A stretch of DNA of 64,000 bases, taken from Basidiobolus meristosporus CBS 931.73. Its lineage: Eukaryota; Fungi; Basidiobolomycota. Of this stretch, positions 30,907-64,000 are shown in pieces. The position numbers were made by a program, and so were the translations under genes. Position 1 is the stretch's first letter. Each line of letters opens with the position of its first letter. The notes beneath the pieces were generated by a model. That model was not told where the DNA came from. It saw only the letters and a list, made by a program, of their open reading frames with translations, and made no database searches. The stretch spans positions 62,001-126,000 of the forward strand of contig MCFE01000171.1 of NCBI GenBank assembly GCA_002104905.1, read 5' to 3'.

Positions 30907-33900
30907 TGTTGTAAAAATTTGTATTTCCACCTAAATATTTACCTAACTTAGTCACTTAGATCATTACCTTCAAATCCTAGAAAATACTGAACAAATTCCT
31001 TGTTGGGATTTACTTGGAATATTTTCACCAAAATACCAGGTACCCAGAACATGAAAATTCTCAAAGTTGTCCATACAGCCCCAAACTTTGCACACATGTT
31101 CTTGGGACCTTCCTTAACCTATTCTACATGTTTGTTATGCCAAGACCAGGTAAAAGTATAAATACTACTTTTACAACCAATAAATCATTAAGTGAAAACC
31201 ACATAATCTACTTGTTCTCCCAATCACTTCCAATATGTCCAAGACTCTTACAACAGGTTATGAGCCCCAAGCTGTCACTCTCTGCAATGTCTACTACTGC
31301 TATTACTGGAATTTTTCCCTCTGCTGAAAAGTTGGATGGCTCTAACTACCAAGTGTGGAAGGTGAAGATGAAGATGCTGCTACAAGAAAGAGGCCTTTGG
31401 GATATTGTCATGGGAGAAGAATCCCCTCCTAAAAACGTGGGAGAGGAAGCCTTAAAGTACCAGAAGAAAGAACAAAGTGCCTTTAACTGCATTTGCCTTA
31501 ATGTCAAGGACAAATTGCTAATTCAATGCTCAAGAGCAAAAACGGCAAAGAATGCCTGGAAGGCATTAGAAGACACATACCAGTCATGTTCAGCTGCCAA
31601 GAAAATGTATCTGAGAAGAAAATTCTTTACTACAAAGATGCTGCCAGGAGAAGAAATGAAAAATCTAATTAACAGAATTACCCTGCTGGTAGATGAGATG
31701 GAATCTGTGGGCGTACCAACTACTGATGAGGATGTGATAGTTACCATCCTGAATAGCCTGACAGACGGGTTTCAGGGCCCTGTATCAGCCCTAGAGTCCA
31801 GAACTGAAGATTTGACCTTAAATTACGTATATGGAAGGCTCCTGGATGAAGAATTAAGAAAATCAAGCACCAATAAGAAGGAAGAAGAAAATGCTTTAAT
31901 AAGCAATGATAACCAACAAAGGAGGTACCCAAGACCCTACAAAGACAACAGCAACCTATTTTGCAACTACTGCAAAAGGAAAGGACACACATCAGACTGC
32001 TGTCTCAAAAAGAGAGATTATCAGCAAAAGAAGCCTGAATATGGAAATGCTGCAACAACTGAGGATAGACTATTCATATCTGCACTAAATATGACCACAA
32101 ACAAGGATTCTCAGACGTGGTATATTGACTCTGGAGCTTCTCAACACTTTACACACCAAAAAGAAATTTTTACCCAATATCAAGAAATTCCAATTAAGAA
32201 GGTTTTCATGGGTGACAATAGAACACTTGATGCAGTGGGAGAAGGAACTATCCAAGTAAACCTTAGAAGCAGTGAAGGAAGCCATACACTGACCTTTAAA
32301 GAAGTACTCTATGTACCAGAAATAGCCAAGAACCTACTCTCTGTAAGCAAGGCCACAGCAGAAGGACTCAGTTTCAGTTTTGACAATTCTGGATGCAGGA
32401 TCACTGATCAAAATGGTGCTCATATTGCTTTGGGCATCAGAGATCAGAATCTATACAAGTTGACTTATATTCCATCATATCTGGAAGCCAATATAAGTAA
32501 CTTAAATGAAGAAACACCAATGCTTTGGCACAGGAGATTTGAACACATCAATTTTGATTATTTGCGTAAAATGATCAAAGATCAGCTAATTTCTGGAGTG
32601 AAAATTGATCTCCCAGCTAATTTGGAGCACTGTGAAGCCTGCATATATGGGAAACAAGCCAGACAACCGTTCAAGAGCTCTGGGTTAATCAAAACTAAGA
32701 AAAAATTAGATCTAATTCACTCAGATCTGTGTGGACCTATGCAAAATTTATCCTTAGGCAGGATGAAGCATTTAATCACTTTTATTGATGATTATACAAG
32801 ATACACATGGGTCTACTTCATGGAGAGAAAGGAAGAAGCTCTGTCTAAGCTCAGGGAGTTTAAAGCCATGGTGGAGAGAGAAACTGGTGAAAAAATCAAG
32901 AAAATATGCTCTGGCAATGGTGGAGAATATACCTCAAAACTCTTCATCCACTTCTGCAAAACTCATGGGATAAAGCAAGAGACTACTGTACCATACTCCC
33001 CACAGCAAAATGGAGTAGCAGAACAAGCTAACAGATCAATAATTGATATGGCAAGATCTATGATCCATGATCAAAAATTATCCTATGATTTTTGGGTGGA
33101 ATCAGTTGCCACTGCTGTATATCTTAAAAATAGGAGTTATAACAGAATACTTTGTGATTCTACTCCACTTGAAGCATGGTATGGGTACAGACCAAGTGCA
33201 GAACATCTAAGAATATTTGGGTGTACAGCATATGCCAAAAAACTGGCCAGAAATCAGTCAATATTTGAGCCAAAAAGTGTAAAATGCATATTTTTGGGCT
33301 ACTGCAATGAGAGTAAGGCATACAGACTCTACAATACCAAAGCAAAGAAGCTTATCAAGTCCAGGGATGTGTTGTTTGATGAAAATTCAAAATTTTCACA
33401 AAAAATGACATCAGATGATGACAAAAATTTGATCTCAAGTCCACCAATTGTCAGGATTGAATCAGAGCAAAACAATGAAAATTTTTTCACTCCAGAGGAC
33501 TCTACAACCGTGGTTCAGCCAGAATCAGTGCCCAGGAATATCCCAGAAGTGATCATTCCAGTATCAAATGCCCGGAGATCAAATGGGACAAGAAATAGCC
33601 CAAATTACTATATCAATGAGGGTACAAACTTAGCCTATGCCTACTCAGTCCATATTGATGAACCCCAGACTGTAAAAGAGGCCCTAAATAGCACTCAGAC
33701 AAAGTTTTGGAGATCTGCAATGACTGAGGAATATCAGGCCCTGATGGAAAATCAAACTTGGGACTCAGTCAAATTACCAATCAACCAAAAATCAATTGGA
33801 TGCAGATGGGTCTTCAAGACAAAATACAAGGCTGATGGTACAATTGAAAGATACAAAGCAAGACTTGTAGCCAATGGATACTCTCAAACAAAAGGACTTG

Positions 33901-35591
33901 ACTATACTGAGACCTTTGCACCAGTAGCCAAGTTTAATTCCATCAGATTAATATTGGCTATTGCAGCCAAATATAAGTTTTTTATTCATCAAATGGATGT
34001 AAAAACTGCATTTTTGAATGGAGAACTTGATGAGGATGTGTATATGGACCAGCCTGATGGGTTTGCTGACCAAGATAACCCCCATTTGGTCTGCAAGCTT
34101 AAAAAGTCACTATATGGTCTCAAACAATCACCAAGAGCCTGGAATTGCAAGATAGATTCATATTTGGAATCTTTGAGTTTCAAAAGGAGTAATGCTGACT
34201 ATAGTATATACTATAAGCCAGATAGAGCAAATCCAGTTCTATTAGCTCTATATGTGGATGATCTTATTATAGCCGCCAATAACCTAGAAACATTGGAAGA
34301 GACTAAATCCAGCCTTTCTAAGGAGTTCAAGATGTCTGATTTGGGAGAACTTAGTTACCACTTAGGGATTAAGTTCTCCATAGACAGAAGTACCCAGACT
34401 ATTACCCTAAGCCAATCCAAGTATATTCAAGATATACTAAAGAAGTACAAAATGGAAGACTGTAAACCGGCAGCTACCCCAATGGAGACAAACCTTAACT
34501 TGGTCAAAACTCAACCAAATCAAGAGAGCTTGGTGCCATCTGAAAGCCCTGACTTTCCTTATCAATCTATGGTCGGCAGTCTGATGTATATCATGCTTGG
34601 AACACGTCCAGATATCTCATATTCAGTGGGAGCTGTCAGCCAACATAATCAGAACTATGGATCTGATCATATTGCAGCAGTTAAGCGGATTTTTAAATAC
34701 CTAAAAGGAACTGCTGATATTTGCTTAAGATACACTTATAAGGACTCAGAATAAGATCTTGTGGGATACTCTGATGCAGATTGGGGACAAAATTTGGAAG
34801 ACAGAAGATCCACCACAGGATACACCTTTCTTTACTGTAAAGGAGCAATTTCATGGAATTCAAGAAAGCAACCAACTGTAGCACTTTCTACTACAGAGGC
34901 AGAGTATATGGCAGCCTGTGAAGCTACAAAAGAAGCAATGTGGTTAAGAAAGCTCTTTACAGATTTAGGCCTATGTCAAAAAATGCCTATTACTTTATTT
35001 CAAGATAATCAAGGATGTATACAATTAGGTAGAAATCCAACTTTTCATGCTAGAACCAAGCACATAGATATTAGACATCATTTCATACGTGAAGCTATAG
35101 AGAATAACTTAGTTAGCTTAGTTTACTGTCCTACAGATGAAATGATTGCAGACATATTTACCAAACCATTAGCTAGAGACAAGTTTGAATATCTTAGGTC
35201 AAAATTAGGACTAGTCAGTATGAACATTTAGCTGTGTGGGAGTGTTGTAAAAATTCGTATTTCCACCTAAATATTCACCTAACTTAGTCACTTATATCAT
35301 TACCTTCAAATCCTAGAAAATACTGACCAAATTCCTTGTCGGGATTTACTTGGAATATTTTCACCAAAATACCAGGTACCCAAAACATGAAAATTCTCAA
35401 AGTTGTCCAAACAGCCCCAAACTTTGCACTCATGTTCTTGGGACCTTCCTTAATCTATTCTATGTGTTTGTTATGCCAAGACCAGGTAAAAGTATAAATA
35501 CTACTTTTACAATCAATAAATCATTTAGTGAAAACCACATAATCTACTTGTTCTCCCAATCACTTCCAATATTGCCAAGACTCTTAAAACA
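30907..35591 (+). mobile_element. Full-length Ty1/copia retrotransposon, copy A1 (4685 bp)
   Basis: 349-bp LTRs 30907-31255 and 35243-35591. TSD TACCT at 30902-30906 and 35592-35596. PBS GGTTATGAGCCC at 31256. PPT GTGTGGGAG. Confidence 0.97.
31260..35231 (+). pseudogene. copia gag-PR-IN-RT-RNaseH with one premature stop and a mutated integrase catalytic Asp
   Basis: Zinc knuckle CNYCKRKGHTSDC, protease WYIDSGAS, integrase HSDLCGP..CSGNGGEY (D to G), RT LYVDDL. TAA at 34752-34754 precedes RNase H YSDADW. Confidence 0.92.
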
Positions 35592-42587: not shown

Positions 42588-43185
42588 TAAAAAAGGCACT
42601 CAAGACCCTTTAAAGACAACAGCAACCTTTCTTGAAGCTACTGTAGAATGAATGGATGCATATTGAACCTGTACTTCCTATGGGTGATTAGAAACAGAAA
42701 ATGACTGAATACTGAAATGTGGTACAATCTAGATGCAGTTGTTTGCAGTCTCTGTTCTTCCTCTTGCAGTTCACTTTCTAATTCCTCAAGGTACTCAGTT
42801 ACCTACTATCTGATACTTTAGAACTGTTGCCTTGATGAGTCCTATGTATAGTGCTCTTGGAAGCAACTTGGTCTGCATATACATAGCATAATATGTTAGT
42901 CATTTCAGGCAAAAACTCATTCAAAATCTCTTTTGTTCCCAAAGATGAGGCACAATTAGATCTGTCCAGCCCATACTATGCATATTGCATGCAGAAATGG
43001 TCTTGTATGGCTTCTTCATCAAATCCCCTCACTCTCAGCTCATTGTTAATTTCTATACTTATCCTGTTGTATATCTTCTTACCTACATCTGCTGGCATCT
43101 TGATGTGGAACTCATACCACAGCTTTTTACTCAAATTCTTCTATCTCTGTCAGCTCTCTGAGATATCCAGTTCTGCTAGATTAAT

Positions 43186-43861
43186 CCCTAAGAAAAAAAA
43201 CTGAAAAAAGGCCAGCAAAATACCATCATAGTATAGGCTGATTTCCAGGTTTCTCAAAATTGACAACTCTCAATACCTCTGTTCTGTTGTAATTATTGAA
43301 TTGTCACCTAAATATTCATGCTAACTTAGTCACATAGATCTTATTCTGTGATTAGCATTCTGTCCTGACTAGATTTCTTGTCGGGATTTACTTAGAATAT
43401 TTTCACCAAATTGTCAGGTACCCAGATTATTATTTTTCTCAAAGTCGTCCAAAAGACCCCAAACTTTGCACACATATTCTTGGGACCTTCCTTAACAAAC
43501 TCTACACGTTTGTTTTCCTCTACTTTATCAAAAGTATAAATACCATACTTTTGATCAATAAATCTACAAGTGAATAACATGTAAATCTTCTAGTTCTCCA
43601 CATCACTTCCAATACTCCTCAGAATATTGCAACATGTTCTAGGCTGATGTGCAGGCAAGCAAACAAGTTCTCCAGGAGGAGACTAGGCCCACTGGCATCC
43701 ATCCCAAATTTGGTAATTAGCTGCCCATTACTTCCATCAAAAAATGCATTTGAAATTTTGAATCCAAAACACCAGCTGAATACCAGCAAAATACCATTAT
43801 AATACCAGCAGAATATTAGCTAAAAATCAGATGAATCTCAAGTTTGTGATTTTTCATAGGG
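43186..43861. mobile_element. CCCTA-ended MITE (CACTA-like), containing a solo LTR
   Basis: Ends CCCTAAGAAAAA and TTTTTCATAGGG; 3-bp TSD AAT. About 321 bp once the nested LTR is removed. Inverted sister copy at 56452-56769. Confidence 0.8.
43285..43634 (+). mobile_element. Solo LTR, family B
   Basis: 350 bp TGTTG..CAACA, matches the LTRs at 49412 and 53049; TSD TGTTC on both sides. Confidence 0.93.
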
Positions 43862-44700
43862 AATGAATAGTGCCTAAATATCTCTATGAAGGCTCATCAT
43901 AGATGCCTGGGCCATACTGAAATCATTTGGCAAGAACTTGAATGGATCCAACATCAAATTTTCTGGTCAAGACCATGCTTGTAAGCTGGGGGATGGGCTT
44001 ATCTGGATTGTATTAAAGATGAGTTACAAATTGGTACAGGGACCATAGTGATGGATTTGGGATACTTATACACTAGTATATTGGCATCTACCTGGTCTTA
44101 TATGAGATATAGATGAAAACATATGTGATTATGGAGTTTTCCATATATTATGCATGATTCATCTTGGACTGCTTTGACACAGATCATGTTGCATCAGTTG
44201 CAGATTTCCCATTTGCTTATATGCTTGTGAATAAATCATCAGTAAAAGCACCAAGGCATTGCTTGAGGATGATTCTTGTAACATAATGATGGTGTACATT
44301 GCAATTGATAGAGATTTAATCACAATGCATGGAAGAGCAGATAAATTAAGCTGATTGTGCCAGACCAATATATATCATATGCCAACAACCACCTACCAGT
44401 CTTGAAATGCCTACTCATCAGAATGGTCTTTTCTTATCAATCCCATCACTACCACAGAAGTCCCTTTTGATGTGTTAGAGTAGATATATACTAAGTACTG
44501 TGGATCATCTACATCAATCTACTCAAGGGGATCCCTTGTTAAGCTTTTTGGCTATTGCTAGAACTATTGCCCTACAAGGTTTCATCCCACCATATCAAGG
44601 TGTTGTTCCACCATCCATGGCAACAAAGGTCCTATAAGCTTTCATTCCCAGCAGACAGCAATGGAGAACCACCTTGCAGCAGATATGAATGACTTAGTAC

Positions 44701-47700
44701 TGTTGTAAGAGTCTTGGAGATATTGGAAGTGATTTGGAGAACAAGTAGATTATGTGGTTTTCACTTAATGATTTATTGAATGTAAAAGTGGTATTTATAC
44801 TTTTACCTGGTCTTGGCATTACAAACACATAGAAGAGGTTAAGGAAGGTCCCAAGAACATGTGTGCAAAGTTTGGGGCTGTTTGGACAACTTTGAGAATT
44901 TTCATGTTCTGGGTACCTGGTATTTTGGTGAAAATATTCTAAGTAAATCCTGACAAGGAATTTGGTCAGTATTTTCTAGGATTTGAAGGTAATGATATAA
45001 GTGACTAAGTTAGGTGAATATTTAGGTGGAAATACAAATTTTTACAACACTCCCACTCAGCTAAATGTTCATACTGACTAGTCCTAATTTTGACCTAAGA
45101 TATTCAAACTTGTCTCTAGCTAATGGTTTGGTAAATATGTCTGCAATCATTTCATCTGTAGGACAGTAAACTAAGCTAACTAAGTTATTCTCTATAGCTT
45201 CACGTATGAAATGATGTCTAATATCTATGTGCTTGGTTCTAGCATGAAAAGTTGGATTTCTACCTAATTGTATACATCCTTGATTATCTTGAAATAAAGT
45301 AATAGGCGTTTTTTGACATAGGCCTAAATCTGTAAAGAGCTTTCTTAGCCACATTGCTTCTTTTGTAGCTTCACAGGCTGCCATATACTCTGCCTCTGTA
45401 GTAGAAAGTGCTATGGTTGGTTGCTTTCTTGAATTCCATGAAATTGCTCCTTTACAGTAAAGAAAGGTGTATCCTGTGGTGGATCTTCTGTCTTCTAAAT
45501 TTTGTCCCCAATCAGCATCAGAGTATCCCACAAGATCCTGTTCTGAATCCTTATAAGTGTATCTTAAGCAGATATCAGCAGTTCCTTTTAGGTATCTAAA
45601 AATCCGCTTAACTGCTACAATATGATCAGATCCATAATTCTGATTATGTTGGCTGACAACTCCCACTGAATATGAGATATCTGGACGTGTTCCAAGCATG
45701 ATATACATCAGACTGCCGACCATAGATTGATAAGGAAAGTCAGGGCTTTCAGATGGCACCAAGCTCTCTTGATTTGGTTGAGTTTTGACCAAGTTAAGGT
45801 TTGTCTCCATTGGGGTAGCTGCCGGTTTACAGTCTTCCATTTTGTACTTCTTTAGTATATCTTGAATATACTTGGATTGGCTTAGGGTAATAGTCTGGGT
45901 ACTTCTGTCTATGGAGAACTTAATCCCTAAGTAGTAACTAAGTTCTCCTAGATCGGACATCTTGAACTCCTTAGATAGGCTGGATTTAGTCTCTTCCAAT
46001 GTTTCTAGGTTATTGGCGGCTATAATAAGATCATCCACATATAGAGCTAATAGAACTGGACTTGCTCTATCTGGCTTATAGTATATACTATAGTCAGCAT
46101 TACTCCTTTTGAAACTCATAGATTCCAAATAAGAATCTATCTTGCAATTGCAGGCTCTTGGTGATTGTTTGAGACCATATAGTGACTTTTTAAGCTTGCA
46201 GACCAAATGGGGGTTATTTTGGTCAACAAACCCATCAGGCTGGTCCATATACACGTCCTCATCAAGTTCTCCATTCAAAAATGCAGTTTTTACATCCATT
46301 TGATGAATAAAAAACTTATATTTGGCTGCAATAGCCAATATTAATCTGATGGAATTAAACTTGGCTACCGGTGCAAAGGTCTCAGTATAGTCAAGTCCTT
46401 TTGTTTGAGAGTATCCTTTGGCTACAAGTCTTGCTTTGTATCTTTCAATTGTGCCATCAGCCTTGTATTTTGTCTTGAAGACCCATCAGCATCCAATTGA
46501 TTTTTGGTTGATTGGTAATTTGACTAAGTCCCAAGTTTGATTTTCCATCAGGGCCTGATATTCCTCAGTCATTGCAGATCTCCAAAACTTCGTCTGAGGG
46601 CTATTTAGGGCCTCTTTTACAGTCTGGGGTTCATCAATATGGACTGAATAGGCATAGGCTAAGTTTGTACCCTCATTGATATAGTAATTTGGGCTATTTC
46701 TTGTCCGATTTGATCTCCGGGCATTTGATACTGGAATGATCACTTCTGGGATATTCCTGGGCACTGATTCTGGCTGAACCATGGTTGTAGAGTCCTCTGG
46801 AGTGAAAAAATTCTCATTGTTTTGCTCTGATTCAATCCTGACAATTGGTGGACTTGAGATCAAATTTTTGTCATCATCTGATGTCATTTTTTGTGAAAAT
46901 TTTGAATTTTCATCAAACAACACATCCCTGGACTTGATCAGCTTTTTTGCTTTGGTATTGTAGAGTCTGTATGCCTTACTCTCATTGCAGTAGCCCAAAA
47001 ATATGCATTTTACACTTTTTGGCTCAAATTTTGACTGATTTCCGGCCAGTTTTTTGGCATATGCTGTACACCCAAATATTCTTAGATGTTCTGCACTTGG
47101 TCTGTATCCATACCATGCTTCAAATGGAGTAGAAACACGAAGTATTCTGTTATAACTCCTATTTTTAAGATATACAGCAGTGGCAACTGATTCCGCCCAA
47201 AAATCATAGGATAATTTTTGATCATGGATTATAGATCTTGCCATATCAATTATTGATCTGTTAGCTCGTTCTGGTACTCCATTTTGCTGTGGGGAGTATG
47301 GTACAGTAGTCTCTTGCTTTATCCCATGAATTTTGCAGAAGTGGATGAAGAGTTTTGAGGTATATTCTCCACCATTGTCAGAGCGTATTTTCTTGATTTT
47401 TTCACCAGTTTCTCTCTCCACCATGGCTTTAAACTCCCTGAACTTAGACAGAGCTTCTTCCTTTCTCTCCGTGAAGTAGACCCATGTGTATCTTGTATGA
47501 TCATCAATAAAAGTGATTAAATACTTCATCCCACCTAAGGATAAATTTTGCATAGGTCCACACAGATCTGAGTGAATTAGATCTAATTTTTTCTTAGTTT
47601 TGATTAACCCAGAGCTCTTGAACGGTTGTCTAGCTTGTTTCCCATATATGCAGGCTTCACAGTGCTCCAAAATAGCTGGTGGATCAATTTTCACTCCAGA

Positions 47701-49384
47701 AATTAGCTGATCTTTGATCATTTTACGCAAATAATCAAAATTGATGTGTCCAAATCTCCTGTGCCAAAGCATTGGTGTTTCTTCATTTAAGTTACTTATA
47801 TTGGCTTCCAAATATGATGGAATATAAGTCAACTTGTATAGGTTCTGATCTCTGATGCCCGAAGCAATATGGGCACCATTTTGATCACTGATCCTGCATC
47901 CAGAATTGTCAAAACTGAAACTGAGTCCTTCTGCTGTGGCCTTGCTTACAGAGAGTAGGTTCTTGGCTATTTCTGGTACATAGAGTACTTCTTTAAAGGT
48001 CAGTGTATGGCTTCCTTCACTGCTTCTTAGGTTTACTTGGATAGTTCCTTCTCCCACTGCATCAAGTGTTCTATTGTCACCCATGAAAACCTTCTTAATT
48101 GGAATTTCTTGATATTGGGTAAAAAGTTCTTTTTGGTGTGTAAAGTGTTGAGAAGCTCCAGAGTCAATATACCACGTCTGAGAATCCTTGTTTGTGGTCA
48201 TATTTAGTGCAGATATGAATAGTCTATCTTCAGTTGTTGCAGCATTTCCATATTCAGGCTTCTTTTTCTGATAATCTCTCTTTTTGAAACACCGGTCTGA
48301 TGTGTGTCCTTTCCTTTTGCAGTAGTTGCAAAATAGGTTGCTGTTGCCTTTGTAGGGTCTTGGGTACCTCCTTTGTTGGTTATCATTGCTTATTAAAGCA
48401 TTTTCTTCTTCCTTCTTATTGGTGCTTGATTTTCTTAATTCTTCATCCAGGAGCCTTCCATATACGTAATTTAAGGTCAAATCTTCAGTTCTGGACTCTA
48501 GGGCTGATACAAGGCCCTGAAACTCGTCTGTCAGGCTATTCAGGATGGTAACTATCACATCCTCATCAGTAGTTGGTACGCCCACAGATTCCATCTCATC
48601 TACCAGCAGGGTAATTCTGTTAATTAGATTTTTCATTTCTTCTCCTGGCAGCATCTTTGTAGTAAAGAATTTTCTTCTCAGATACATTTTCTTGGCAGCT
48701 GAACATGACTGGTAGGTGTCTTCTAATGCCTTCCAGGCATTCTTTGCCGTTTTTGCTCTTGAGCATTGAATTAGCAATTTGTCCTTGACATTAAGGCAAA
48801 TGCAGTTAAAGGCACTTTGTTCTTTCTTCTGGTACTTTAAGGCTTCCTCTCCCACGTTTTTAGGAGGGCATTCTTCTCCCATGACAATATCCCAAAGGCC
48901 TCTTTCTTGTAGCAGCATCTTCATCTTCACCTTCCACACTTGGTAGTTAGAGCCATCCAACTTTTCAGCAGAGGGAAAAATTCCAGTAATAGCAGTAGTA
49001 GACATTGCAGAGAGTGGCAGCTTGGGGCTCATAATCTGTTGTAAGAGTCTTGGAGATATTGGAAGTGATTTGGAGAACAAGTAGATTATGTGGTTTTCAC
49101 TTAATGATTTATTGAATGTAAAAGTGGTATTTATACTTTTACCTGGTCTTAGCATTACAAACACGTAGAATAGATTAAGGAAGGTCCCAAGAACATGTGT
49201 GCAAAGTTTGGGGCTGTTTGGACAACTTTGAGAATATTCATGTTCTGGGTACCTGGTATTTTGGTGAAAATATTCTAAGTAAATCCTGACAAGGAATTTG
49301 GTCAGTATTCTCTAGGTTTGAAGGTGATGATCTAAGTGACTAAGTTAGGTGAATATTTAGGTGGAAATACGAATTTTCACAACA
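44701..49384 (-). mobile_element. Full-length Ty1/copia retrotransposon, copy A2
   Basis: LTRs 44701-45049 and 49037-49384; TSD AGTAC. PBS GATTATGAGCCC (one mismatch). gag-pol broken by a single TGA at 46486-46488; integrase RSDNGGEY..ERANR intact. Confidence 0.97.
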
Positions 49385-49411
49385 AGTACAAGATTCAAGT
49401 AGAGCATTTTG

Positions 49412-57280: not shown

Positions 57281-58703
57281 ATGGCTGGAAGGCTTGTTAC
57301 AATAGCCACAATGTGTCAGCTTGTTCATAGTGCTGGATCAATCTAGCACTCTAAGGCACTATCTGGCACTATCCTTTTTATCACAATGCCAGTGGTAGGA
57401 TATAGTTACTGGTAACTATACTCAATCTTGCTTATGTTGCTCATATTAGTGCTTTCCTTGCTATATCTACTCTTCATATTAGACTTGTTCCATCATACCG
57501 TGCCAGGGCGCGTGGCGCAATCCGCGGTTGCAAAGAACGATCGGGCACGATATTATAGCTACCAGAAGGCAGGATTGTTCTTGGACAATTTTGCACTATG
57601 CGGGACAATCTCGCACACTATGGCACAATCTGACACGATGAGGTTGGCGCGGATGATCGCGCCAACTCGTAATGCTTGCATCACATGCGCGATTGGATAC
57701 CGCTATAATGGCAGGTAAAATCCGGTATTTGGATATGTTTCTTTAATGTAAATGGAAATAAATGTGTATCACACTATAAACTACACTGATACTTACCATT
57801 TTGGTTACCCTCACTCCAATTGGACGGTATCTCAGTGGTTAATTGGTCCAAAAGTATCCTGAAGCTGGCAGCCCCCAATTGGCTCATTGACTACTGAAAA
57901 AGCTACCTGATTTGCCATCAAATATCCCATTTTGCCCATTGAGCAAGTAAATCCCTGATCCTAGTGATTGGGCAAGGTGTCATAGCTAGCATGCAAGCGA
58001 TCGTGTAGGTGCAAAACAGATCCAATAGCTGCACTGGTATTACAGATGACGTATATATATGCAGGGTGTTTATTTATAAGGGTTCTGTCTCAAATGTGAG
58101 ACGACCTTGATATTACTTATATCAAAAATTTGATGATCACTGATTTGCGATGGCTCAATTCGGATCGCAAAAAAAAAGGGTTGTTGGGATCATTACGAAT
58201 GTGAGTGATTCAAAGCAATCGCATTATCTTCTCCTGGGTTTTTTTCTCACAGGGATTACTACTGAAGCATTTGGTAGTGACTCACTTTGCACACCTATAC
58301 TACTTCCTGGCTGACTATCATCTTGGCTACTTGTGTATTTGTAGTCAGTATTTTGCCTCCTAGTTGATGAGTGCGATGCTGCAGCTTGGCCACGCTGAAT
58401 CGCTCCAACTGAACCAACTGAACCAACTGAACCGGCCTGTAGTGCCACGCACTGACGCGTTCTTTTACTTGCCAAGGGCTCCGGTGGTTGAGTCACTTCA
58501 TGTTGGTCATCATCAGTCAGTTCACCAGAAGTAACTCGCTGATGGTCAGGCAAAACAGCACACGCAGGCGCGCCTTGACGCGTTGAGATGGCCCTTGGCT
58601 GAGTTCGATGTGATGCCGCATGTTGACGTGACTTGGTCCGCTCCAATGGACTTGTGTCTAACTGAGCAGTTTGGTGAGTTCTGGTAGTTTTGCTCTGAAG
58701 CGC

Positions 58704-59774
58704 TGTAGTGGGGTGACAGTGACACCCACTGACAAATGTGCTCATTCCCTTATTTTCTACTTCCCTATATCTCTACTACACTTATTTTAGTTTTATCCCA
58801 TTTGTCTTACCCAATCAGTACTATCCCATAAGCCGGTTGACTATCACACCTGCTTACCTTATTGCATAAGTTACCCCTCACTTTATGTAAGATTACTAGC
58901 TATAAGTACTTCTAAATTAGGCAAGTACCCGCGCCAGTGCCCGTGACACATGATCAGCCCGTGTGACCATCCCTACCATTTCCATACCATATATGGTATC
59001 CCCATGTTACACAGGTTTCAGAATACTGATTCCTGATTGGTTGGATGTGCTGTGCCTCTTAGAACCTTCCGGCACCTACTTAGAACATTCTTAGGTCATT
59101 CTGATGTCATTAAGATTTCTATTGATATCCGGAACCTTCTGGAACACCATGATTAGTAATCACTTAGCCAGTAAGAAAAGTATATAAGGGAGGCTATCCC
59201 TCAACAATAAATCATCATCCCTTTTATCAATATACCGACTTGTTGATTAGTGTGATCACTGCTACCTGCTGCTACCTGAACTTCCAACCCCAGACCACAG
59301 GACACTCCCAGGAAACCGCGCTGACAGCCAACTGACCTTGGAGGCACTACTTGTGAGGAATACTCAGAGTAGGTATCTTTTATTATATTTGGTTCTTTCC
59401 CAAGTTTGTTCTTGTACAGGCAAAGATACTTTTCTGTCTTTGTAACTATTGACCACAGCTGCATTCTTATCAAGTCCCTGCTGGTGGAGTTTACAGTTGT
59501 TTTGACTTTGGAAGCTTTAGTACATTGTCATCTCAAAGGACACTGAACCCAGCACATACTTTTGTTAAGACGCCAACTAAGTTGGGGATTGTAGCTCAAT
59601 AGTTTTCCCTTGACAAGCTTGTGGCTTTATTCCCCTTCACATTAGATTAGAGACAGAACCCAAGTATTCCTAGCAAGCTTTTGCCAGAGGTTATCGCACC
59701 CAGTGAACACCCCACACACAAAACACTTGAGAAGTGTTGGACGTATCTCTCCCTTGGACTTATACACCACCACA
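58704..59774 (+). mobile_element. Solo LTR, family E (1071 bp)
   Basis: TGTAGTGG..CCACCACA; flanks GCGC (58700-58703) and GCAC (59775-59778). TATA-like GTATATAA near 59180; AATAAA near 59205. Confidence 0.85.
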
Positions 59775-59926
59775 GCACGCGCGTTGACCCGACGGGCGTT
59801 GACTCAATGCGCGTTGACTTGACGCAGGGCGTTCTGGTAAAGGGTGTTGGCGTGGTCTGGACTGACATGCGCCGGCGAGCTGTGGTTGCAAGAGATGGTA
59901 GGGCATCCAGCGAGGCGTGCTGGCGC

Positions 59927-60998
59927 TGTGGTGGTGTATAGGTCTAAGGGAGAGATATGTCCAACACTTCTCAAGTGTTTTGTGTGTGGGGTGTTCACTG
60001 GGTGCGATAACCTCTGGCAAAAGCTTGCTAGGAATACTTGGGTTCTGTCTCTAATCTAATGTGAAGGGGAATAAAGCCACAAGCTTGTCAAGGGAAAACT
60101 ATTGAGCTACAATTCCCAACTTAGTTGGCGTCTTAACAAAAGTATGTGCTGGGTTCAGCGTCCTTTGAGATGACAATGTACTAAAGCTTCCAAAGTCAAA
60201 ACAACTGTAAACTCCACCAGCAGGGACTTGATAAGAATGCAGCTTTGGTCAATAGTTACAAAGACAGAAAAGTATCTTTGCCTGTACAAGAACAAACTTG
60301 GGAAAGAATCAAATATAATAAAAGATACCTACTCTGAGTATTCCTCACAAGTAGTGCCTCCAAGGTCAGTTGGCTGTCAGCACGGTTTCCTGGGAGTGTC
60401 CTGTGGTCTAGGGTTGGAAGTTCAGGTAGCAGCAGGTAGCAGTGATCACACTAATCAACAAGTTGGTATATTGATAAAAGGGATGATGATTTATTGTTGA
60501 GGGATAGCCTCCCTTATATACTTTTCTTCACTGGCTAAGTGATTACTAATCATGGTGTTCCAGAAGGTTCCGGAGTTCAATAGAAATCTTAATGACATCA
60601 GAATGACCTAAGAATGTTCTAAGTAGGTGCCGGAAGGTTCTAAGAGGCACAGCACATCCAACCAATCAGGAATCAGTATTCTGAAACCTGTGTAACATGG
60701 GGATACCATATATGGTATGGAAATGGTAGGGATGGTCACACGGGTTGATCATGTGTCACGGGTACTGGCGCGGGTACTTGCCTAATATAGAAGCACTTGT
60801 AACTAGTAATCTTACATAAAGTGAGGGGTAACTTATGCAATAAGGTAAGCAGGTGTGATAGTCAACCGGCTTATGGGATAGTACTGATTGGGTAAGACAA
60901 ATGGGATAAAACTAAAATAAGTGTAGTAGAGATATAGGGAAGTAGAAAATAAGGGAATGAGCACATCTGTTAGTGGGTGTCACTGTCACCCCACTACA
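59927..60998 (-). mobile_element. Solo LTR, family E (1072 bp), inverted
   Basis: Reverse complement of 58704-59774 with about 20 differences by hand count. TSD GCGC at 59923-59926 and 60999-61002. Confidence 0.85.
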
Positions 60999-62005
60999 GC
61001 GCAATCTGGACAATGTTGCTCGCGGTCTGTATTCTGCCTCCTGAAGCTCACCATCTGATTCCTCAAGGTATTCACTTACCCTCTGTCTGATACTTTGGAG
61101 CTGTTGCCTGGATGAGTCCTGTGTATATTGCTCTCGGAAGCCACTTAGCTCTACTAATATATCACGTAGTACATTAGTCATTTGAGGCAAAAACTCATTC
61201 AAAATCTCTTTGGTTCCCAAAGTTGAGGCACGAACGGACGCATCCGGCCCGTACTGTGCAAATTGCGCGCAAAATTGTTCCCGCGCGGCTTCCTTGTCAA
61301 ATCCCCTCACTCTCAGCTCATTCTTGATTTCAATACTTGTCTTGTTATATATCTTTTTACATACATTGGCTGGCATCTTGATGTAGAACTCATGCCACAG
61401 CTTTCTACTCAAATTCTTCCATCCTTGTCAACTCTCTGAGGTATCTAGTTCTGCTAGATTAATCAGTAGTGCCCAAATATCTGTATGAAGGCTCATCATA
61501 GACACTTGGGCCATACTAAAATCATTTGGCGAGAACTCGAACGGATCCAACATCGACTTTTCCGGTCCGAACCGCGCTTGTGAGCTGGGGGATGGGTTTT
61601 GTCTGGGTTGTACTAAAGATGAGTTGAGGCTTGGTATGGGGACCATAGCAACGGATTTGGATACTTATACAGCAGTATATTGGCATCAACCTGGTCTTAT
61701 ATGAAATATATATGAAAACTAAAGTGATTGTTGAATTTTCCATATATTATGCATGATGCATCTCGGATTGCATTGACACGGATCAGATCACATCAATTGC
61801 AGATTTCCTATTTGATTATAGACCTATGATTAAAGCATCAATAAAAGTACCAAGGCATTGTTTGCGGATGATTTTTGCAACATAATGATGGGATACATGG
61901 CAATTGATGGAGATTTAACCATAATGTGTTAAAAATCAGATAAATAACGCAGATCGCGCCAAATCAATTCAAACCGCCTCCATACAATCATCCATCAATT
62001 TTAAT

Positions 62006-62890
62006 ATGACTTACTCATCTGAATGGTCTTTTCTCATCAATCCCATCACTACCACTGGATTTCCTTTTGACACACTGGAGGAGATCTATTCCAAGTACTG
62101 TGGACCATCAACCCCAATCTACTCAAGGAGATCCCTTGTTAAGCTTCTCTGCAATTACAAGAACTATTGCCCTACAAGGTTTCATCCCACCATCCATGGC
62201 AACAAAAGTCCTAGAAGCTTTCATTCCCAGCAGACAGCAATGGAGAACCATCTTGCAGAGGGTATGAATGACTTAGAGCAAGCTTGGAATACTAGGTTCA
62301 GAAGCTCCAATAGACTTCCATATCCCAGAGTGTTCAGCAACAGGTTCCATATCAGGAGTATTTTGGATACCTTCCCAGTGAGGATTAACAGACCTTCTAG
62401 AGGGCAGAGGCACTTTTATTCTCGCAAGTACAAGGCACACTGTGTGAAGTTTCAAGCACTGTCTGACATTGAGGGTAACATCATCTGGTTTAGTGGGCCA
62501 TTTGCTGGAAGTAGTCATGACAAAGCACTCTGGGTAGAGAATCATCCTGAATTCAGTAGAGGGGAGAAATGTATGGCAGACTTGGCCTATATAGGAGAGG
62601 ATTGTCAGAGATTAGGATGTATTACAGCTTATAGGAAGCCAAGGAATGTTGTGCTTAGCAGGAAGCAGAAGCTCTACAATGAGATATTTAATCATTTCAG
62701 AGTAAGGGTAGAGCACACATTTGGATATCTGAAGAGATTCAGCATATTGGCAGGTAAATACAGAGGAAAGTCATATATAGGAGAAAACAGCAGAATAGGT
62801 AAAATAGTTAAGATACTTATCAATGCACAGTATGTTCATACAAGAAGACATCCACTGAGAGAAATGTGTCTGGAGCATTATGAAGAGTAA
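62006..62890 (+). CDS. PIF/Harbinger-type DDE transposase (DDE_Tnp_4-like), intact 294 aa
   Basis: Catalytic motifs ILDTFP, GPFAGSSHD, MADLAY, YRKP, RVRVEHTFGYLKRF. Confidence 0.88.
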   Translation: MTYSSEWSFLINPITTTGFPFDTLEEIYSKYCGPSTPIYSRRSLVKLLCNYKNYCPTRFHPTIHGNKSPRSFHSQQTAMENHLAEGMNDLEQAWNTRFRSSNRLPYPRVFSNRFHIRSILDTFPVRINRPSRGQRHFYSRKYKAHCVKFQALSDIEGNIIWFSGPFAGSSHDKALWVENHPEFSRGEKCMADLAYIGEDCQRLGCITAYRKPRNVVLSRKQKLYNEIFNHFRVRVEHTFGYLKRFSILAGKYRGKSYIGENSRIGKIVKILINAQYVHTRRHPLREMCLEHYEE

Positions 62891-63076
62891 ATAAAGCAAG
62901 GAAAGCACTATTCTGAGCAACATAAGTAAGATTGAGTAAAATTACCAGTAACTGTATCATACCACTGGCATCATGGTAGAAATTATAGTGCCAGATAGTG
63001 CCGTAGAGTGCCAGATCGATCCGGCACTATAAACCGGCTGGCACTATGTGGCACTATCCAACGGAACAAGTCTATT

Positions 63077-63945
63077 GCTCCAGACACATTTCTCTGAGTG
63101 GATGTCTTCTTGTATGAATATACTGTGCATTAATAAGTATATTAGCTATTTTACCTATTCTGCTGTTTTCTCCCACATACAACTTTCCTCTGTATTTACC
63201 AGCCAATATGCTGAATCTCTTCAGAAATCCAAATGTATGCTCTACCCTCACTCTGACATGATTAAATATTTCATTGTAGAGTGTCTGCTTCCTGCTATGC
63301 ACACCATTCCTTGGCTTCCTATATGCTGTACTATATCCTAACCTCTGACAATCCTCTTCTATATGAGCTAAGTCTGCCATACATTTCTCCCCTTTGCCAA
63401 GTTCAGGATGATTCTCTACCCAGAGTGCTTTGTCATGCCTACTTCCAGCAAATGGCCCACTAAACCAGATGATGTTACCCTCAATGTCAGACAGTGATTG
63501 AAACTTCACAGTGTGCCTTGTACTTGCCAGAATAAAAGTGCCTCTGCCCTCTAGAAGTTCTGTTAATCCTCACTGGGAAGGTATCCAAAATACTCCTGAT
63601 ATGGAACCTGTTGCTGAACCCTCTGGGATGTGGAAGTCTATTGGAGCATCTGAGCCAAGTATTCCAAGCTTGCTCTAAGTCATTCATTCCTTCTGCAAGG
63701 TGGTTCTCCATTGCTGTCAGCTGGGAATGAAAGCTTCTAGGACTTTTGCTACCATGGATGGTGGGATGAAGCCTTGTGGGGCAATAGTTTCTGTAATAGC
63801 AGAGATGCTCAACAAGGGATCCCCTTATATAGATTGAGGTAGATGGTCCACTGTACTTGGTATAGGTCTCCTCTACTGTGTTGAAAGGAGATCCAGTGGT
63901 GGTGATGGGATTGATGAGAAAAGACCATTCAGATGAGTAAGTCAT
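63077..63945 (-). pseudogene. Frameshifted transposase of copy H3
   Basis: Near-identical to 62006-62890, but a 2-bp loss in CACTGTGTGAAG (about 63505-63515) shifts the frame, and the 3' end is cut by the H2 insertion. Confidence 0.88.
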
Positions 63946-64000
63946 ATCAAAATTGATAGGTGCTTGGGCTGAGGTGAATTCAATTAATTTGGGGCAATCA

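Follow-up and report, generated by a model that had tools for sequence, protein, structure and literature searches.

Two solo-LTR-like elements in Basidiobolus meristosporus point to a probable fungal retrotransposon family with a CG-centered 4-bp target

In a stretch of Basidiobolus meristosporus CBS 931.73 DNA (contig MCFE01000171.1, positions 62,001 to 126,000; all 64,000 nt are called the window here), two closely related 1.07-kb elements lie in opposite orientations within open reading frame 2 (ORF2) of a Harbinger-type transposon. Each is bounded by the tetranucleotide GCGC, with one of the four flanking copies differing by a single transition. The two are independent insertions, each with its own 4-bp duplication. 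We consider them probably to be solo long terminal repeats (LTRs) of one LTR-retrotransposon family that integrates with a 4-bp stagger and prefers targets centered on CG. The window supports a CG-centered target; a strict requirement for GCGC is beyond what two sites can establish. That the elements are LTRs, and the type of integrase that placed them, we infer from their ends, their flanks and comparison with known families.

The left element (L), a putative solo LTR of 1071 nt on the plus strand, occupies positions 58704-59774 and runs from TGTAG to CCACA; the right element (R), a putative solo LTR of 1072 nt on the minus strand, occupies 59927-60998. In a base-by-base alignment, made with 20 nt of flank on each side, they differ by 20 substitutions, of which 16 are transitions and several lie at CpG, plus a single 1-nt indel, or about 98% identity. 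The termini of both elements are TGT and ACA (TGTAGTGG... and ...CCACCACA), so the pair of 1.07-kb TG..CA elements described in the original prediction is indeed present at these positions. As arms, L and R make a 2.3-kb near-palindrome around a spacer of 148 nt. The LTR itself is CpG-poor, with an observed/expected (o/e) CpG ratio of 0.24-0.28. It has internal GCGC sites at 58931, 59318 and 60768, and the 59318 site of L is gone in R by a C-to-T change. Copy counts, composition and controls all refer to the 64-kb window of this one contig. There, neither blastn at word sizes 9 and 7 nor nhmmer --max with a two-copy profile found a third copy, even a degenerate one. A 90-aa ORF of the LTR is without homologues in public data, two LTR oligomers have zero exact matches among metagenome contigs, and scans for Rfam families and tRNAs were empty.

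The extent of the duplications follows from the same alignment, in which the similarity between L and R collapses directly outside the flanking tetranucleotides. For L, these are GCGC at 58700-58703, where the similarity stops, and GCAC at 59775-59778, a single CpG transition away from GCGC. For R, they are GCGC at both 59923-59926 and 60999-61002, each at the boundary of similarity. Extension to 5 bases gives mismatched flanks at both elements (AGCGC/GCACG at L and GGCGC/GCGCA at R). In contrast, the copia insertions of the same window have 5-bp target-site duplications (TSDs), TACCT for the element at 30907-35591 and AGTAC for that at 44701-49385. Since these copia neighbors make 5-bp duplications, the 4-bp stagger belongs to the 1.07-kb family. 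The two copia elements are full-length (RVT_2, rve and gag), lie in opposite orientation and are 98% identical across 4.6 kb. The flanking tetranucleotides, the misfit of 5-bp duplications and the unrelated 5-bp duplications of the copia insertions had all been claimed in the original prediction, and each was found as described, the misfit both in the flanks and in the reading frame of the host.

That frame is provided by ORF2, which is read on the minus strand. Its 5' piece lies at 61003-61412, a middle segment between the insertions lies at 59779-59922, and its 3' piece, at 58224-58699, is open for 157 codons to a stop at 58224. In minus-strand translation, the stretch 61412-60999 ends in ...ATLSRLR, with its final codon at GCGC, and 59922-59776 reads QHASLD...GSTRV, so that 49 codons of the middle segment are open in the frame shared by the outer pieces. 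One ORF2 codon is split across L, after which the frame resumes as QSKTTRTH... up to the stop. Excision of 1072+4 and 1071+4 nt thus restores a single open minus-strand frame, ...SRLR / QHASLD...STRV / L / QSKTT.... Because the elements sum to 2143 nt, the outer pieces are in frame only if the duplications total 2 mod 3, which holds for 4+4 and fails for 5+5 and 4+5. The spacer also matches its flanks in composition, with a GC content of 64% and a CpG o/e of 1.18. At 59781-59826 it carries the motif GCGTTGAC three times with a 15-nt period, encoding repeated S-T-R peptides, and GCGTTGA is also present in the left flank, at position 58580. The in-frame reading, the flank-like composition and the motif common to the left flank together identify the spacer as host DNA and not as the inside of a foldback element. 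In the host transposon, the GCGTTGAC run could represent a short tandem repeat of coding sequence or an array of binding sites.

The original prediction had named a DNA transposon with terminal inverted repeats (TIRs) as the competing identity for these elements. The inverted similarity of the termini (TGTRGTGG) covers 7 of the first 8 bases and 16 of the first 30, and we found no long TIR in the elements beyond about 8-11 bp. One strand has a single strong TATA box, TATATAAG, at element position 478, followed by AATAAA at 503 (L, plus strand); these are consensus matches only, and they fit an LTR. Both elements carry two marks of a solo LTR, namely TG...CA termini that make up a short inverted repeat and a flanking TSD within the 4-6 bp range. 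Judged by sequence, then, they look like solo LTRs rather than a TIR transposon. A more specific form of the DNA-transposon idea is a non-autonomous, Ginger1-like cut-and-paste element, mobilized by a gypsy-like integrase/transposase. The TGTAG/TGTGG ends fit the TGTNR pattern, which gypsy LTRs also share, the duplication is a CG-centered 4-mer, though GCGC and not CCGG or CCGT, and the window holds no LTR-flanked parent. The TIRs of Ginger1 are 40-270 bp long, against the 7/8 and 16/30 terminal bases matched here, and reports of the family cover four animal species only (PMC2836005). With the single TATA box and AATAAA also suiting an LTR, we hold this identity to be very improbable. It could also be supposed that the pair is one structure, either a foldback (inverted-repeat) element or a single insertion that was duplicated in inverse orientation along with its flank, as the 2.3-kb near-palindrome around its 148-nt spacer might suggest. 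Yet the similarity stops at the 4-bp flanks, each arm has a separate 4-bp duplication, and the spacer is in-frame host ORF2. We therefore reject a foldback or inverted-duplication origin, which the flank boundaries and the in-frame spacer contradict and to which we allow next to no probability.

The question of whether GCGC was chosen by the integrase or met by chance depends on how common it is locally. Of all 4-mers, GCGC accounts for 0.12% in the window, for 0.52% in the host transposon as it was before insertion and for 1.06% in the ORF2 part (the ORF2 pieces were searched separately and joined solely for these 4-mer counts). Insertions with a 4-bp stagger but no target preference could have landed in a GC-rich stretch, with the shared GCGC due to coincidence or to survival bias within a transposon gene that is dead and tolerated. 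This account draws on the local richness of ORF2 (11 GCGC in 1038 nt), on the post hoc choice of the finding and on the more cautious figure for chance, P of about 0.005 for the two TSDs being any identical 4-mer. Against it, two random insertions would both fall at GCGC with P of about 3e-5 to 1e-4, and two CG-centered sites would arise by chance in the host transposon with P of about 9e-4; we regard it as quite improbable. At the other extreme, the integrase might recognize GCGC itself and insert nowhere else. Both sites are GCGC, and site L lies inside a GCGCGCGCG run that is reminiscent of the ZAM target CGCGCg (PMC2527525). Under a looser, NCGN-only rule, two GCGC matches would have P of just 0.03-0.05, because GCGC is the commonest CG-centered tetramer of this ORF (18-22% of CpGs). 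The two-of-two score therefore favors a GCGC-only over an NCGN rule by a likelihood ratio of just 20-30 or so. With n = 2, and with GCGC accounting for as much as 22% of the CpGs here, we think the strict version unlikely. The "GCGC-specific integrase" of the original prediction is thus retained as two independent 4-bp insertions at GCGC but not as a strict rule, given that two sites cannot separate GCGC from NCGN (P 0.03-0.05). The preference could be as narrow as GCGC or as broad as NCGN.

Several points weigh against our preferred reading, that of two solo LTRs with a CG-centered preference. There are two sites only (n = 2), and the evidence from this window alone is accordingly thin. The duplication at L is imperfect, with GCAC in place of GCGC. 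The U5 region implied by the TATA box and AATAAA, at about 540 nt, would be unusually long, which leaves the sense strand uncertain. Openness of the spacer is in itself weak evidence, as a second of its three minus-strand frames is open too. Finally, the window contains no full-length element, primer-binding site, polypurine tract, reverse transcriptase (RT) or integrase of this family, and no gypsy-type RT or integrase domain was found among the ORFs of the surrounding repeat island.

Under the preferred reading, the CpG-rich ORF2 of a young Harbinger-type transposon would have received two full elements in separate events, 148 bp apart and oriented oppositely, and each would later have collapsed to a solo LTR through LTR-LTR recombination. 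The empty sites would read ...CTCTGAA-GCGC-GCGCGTTG... for L and ...GTGCTG-GCGC-AATCTGG... for R. The integrase of the family would cut its target with a 4-bp stagger, like the integrases of gypsy-type elements, murine leukemia virus (MLV) and foamy viruses, and unlike those of the 5-bp copia elements nearby. It would prefer a tetranucleotide with a central CG, which was GCGC on both occasions. From what is known of other families, such a preference would probably be intrinsic to a two-fold symmetric intasome. The target would have to bend sharply at a flexible pyrimidine-purine step midway across the 4-bp stagger, and together with base contacts favoring C-G this would select palindromic targets such as GCGC and CCGG. 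Among retroviruses, enrichment of a central pyrimidine-purine step is strongest for those with 4-bp TSDs, whose targets are weakly palindromic and are contacted by named integrase residues (PMC4422553). Tight forms of such a preference are known from ZAM, whose integrase binds directly to CGCGCg (PMC2527525), from errantiviruses at large and from Ginger1.

The base composition of the window bears on where such an integrase could act. The genic part (1-28000) has a CpG o/e of 0.81 and the old repeat island (28001-57480) one of 0.20, with GpC near 1 throughout; so sharp a contrast is the signature expected where methylation and deamination of CpG are restricted to repeats. The corresponding densities of GCGC are 1.96 and 0.07 per kb, against 5.2 per kb in the host transposon. 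The old repeats being nearly free of GCGC, an integrase that required CG would be kept out of them, and in so CpG-rich an ORF as ORF2 two insertions 148 bp apart are unsurprising. It had been proposed in addition that target choice steers insertions into young or unmethylated DNA. The densities of 0.07 and 5.2 per kb bear this out as arithmetic only; sensing of methylation or an adaptive preference has no support here. A further variant has a fungal integrase with a tight, intrinsic requirement for a CG-centered palindrome, the activity of which depends on the methylation of that CG, so that insertion is steered toward or away from unmethylated young DNA. This strikes us as distinctly unlikely.

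The host transposon encodes, on the plus strand at 62006-62890, a DDE_Tnp_4 (PIF/Harbinger-type) transposase (PF13359, E = 1.3e-23), for which a search of public data returned just two distant matches. Neither outer piece of ORF2 falls in a Pfam family, and the 5' piece has no homologues by word search. Upstream, the minus-strand frame from 61646 down to 60999 contains one in-frame stop at about 61428-61430 (...TSES*QGWKN...), so the upstream part of ORF2 either is broken or depends on an intron or on a start beyond the stop. The transposase region is present as two inverted copies, at 61952-62880 and 63073-63999, which are 90-92% identical, lie 192 nt apart and reach the end of the window. 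A paralogous fragment of the host transposon at 42725-44697, about 81% identical to 61002-62276, starts exactly at the base homologous to the R insertion site, and GTAC at 42722-42725 aligns with the GCGC of 60999-61002, two CpG transitions apart. The junction at 42725 was considered as the end of a related LTR and rejected, its left neighbor being an internally deleted copia piece. The start of this fragment at the R-homologous site may be a coincidence, or the DNA may have broken there more than once.

Sequence-specific integration has been described, in a review of LTR elements in Drosophila, as exclusive to errantiviruses and their derivatives (PMC5408687). If our reading is true, the choice of CG-centered 4-bp sites extends to a fungal family whose TG/CA ends are ordinary, which would widen that errantivirus-only picture and link LTR integrases to the habit of Ginger1. 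It would also offer an integrase that naturally uses a short, defined target, useful for studying how intasomes read target DNA. Moreover, with a CpG o/e of 0.2 in the old repeats, a CG rule would automatically leave only genes and young repeats open to new insertions, and this bears on the evolution of this repeat-rich genome.

Among fungal Ty3/gypsy elements, Ylt1 reportedly makes 4-bp duplications as well (Schmid-Berger et al., 1994). We know of no CG-centered target for Ylt1. The Ylt1 lineage resembles the family described here in being fungal and in having long LTRs, of about 715 bp (PMC5014426). The intasomes of prototype foamy virus (PFV) and MLV also produce a 4-bp duplication at a weakly palindromic target with a strong preference for a flexible pyrimidine-purine step at its center (PMC4422553), and CG is such a step. 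The retroviral preference, however, is weak, statistical and not restricted to CG, whereas the one at work here may be much tighter.

Ginger1 shares with these elements the TGTNR termini and CG-centered, palindromic 4-bp duplications, which in Ginger1 are CCGG in 75% of cases and CCGT in 24%, and its transposase has a gypsy-type integrase fold (PMC2836005). It differs in moving by cut-and-paste, in its 40-270-bp TIRs and in having been reported only from animals; the element here is without long TIRs and resembles a promoter-bearing LTR.

The errantiviruses ZAM and Tirant of Drosophila, which belong to Ty3/gypsy, too duplicate 4 bp at a palindromic target of alternating G and C, in their case CGCG within CGCGCg, and are LTR elements whose integrase itself binds the target (PMC2527525, PMC5408687); errantivirus targets in general are TATA, CGCG or ATAT (PMC5408687). 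Site L, which sits in GCGCGCGCG, adds to the likeness. The differences are several. The duplicated tetramer is GCGC rather than CGCG, its register shifted by one base, and site R is without an extended GC run. The termini are canonical TGT..ACA, not of the non-canonical errantivirus type, whereas sequence specificity has been tied to the distinctive LTR ends of errantiviruses (PMC5408687). The host is a fungus, and the family is not known to have an env or third ORF. CG-centered palindromic 4-base targets are thus already known from ZAM and Ginger1, and a fungal LTR family with ordinary ends would be a modestly new variation on that habit.

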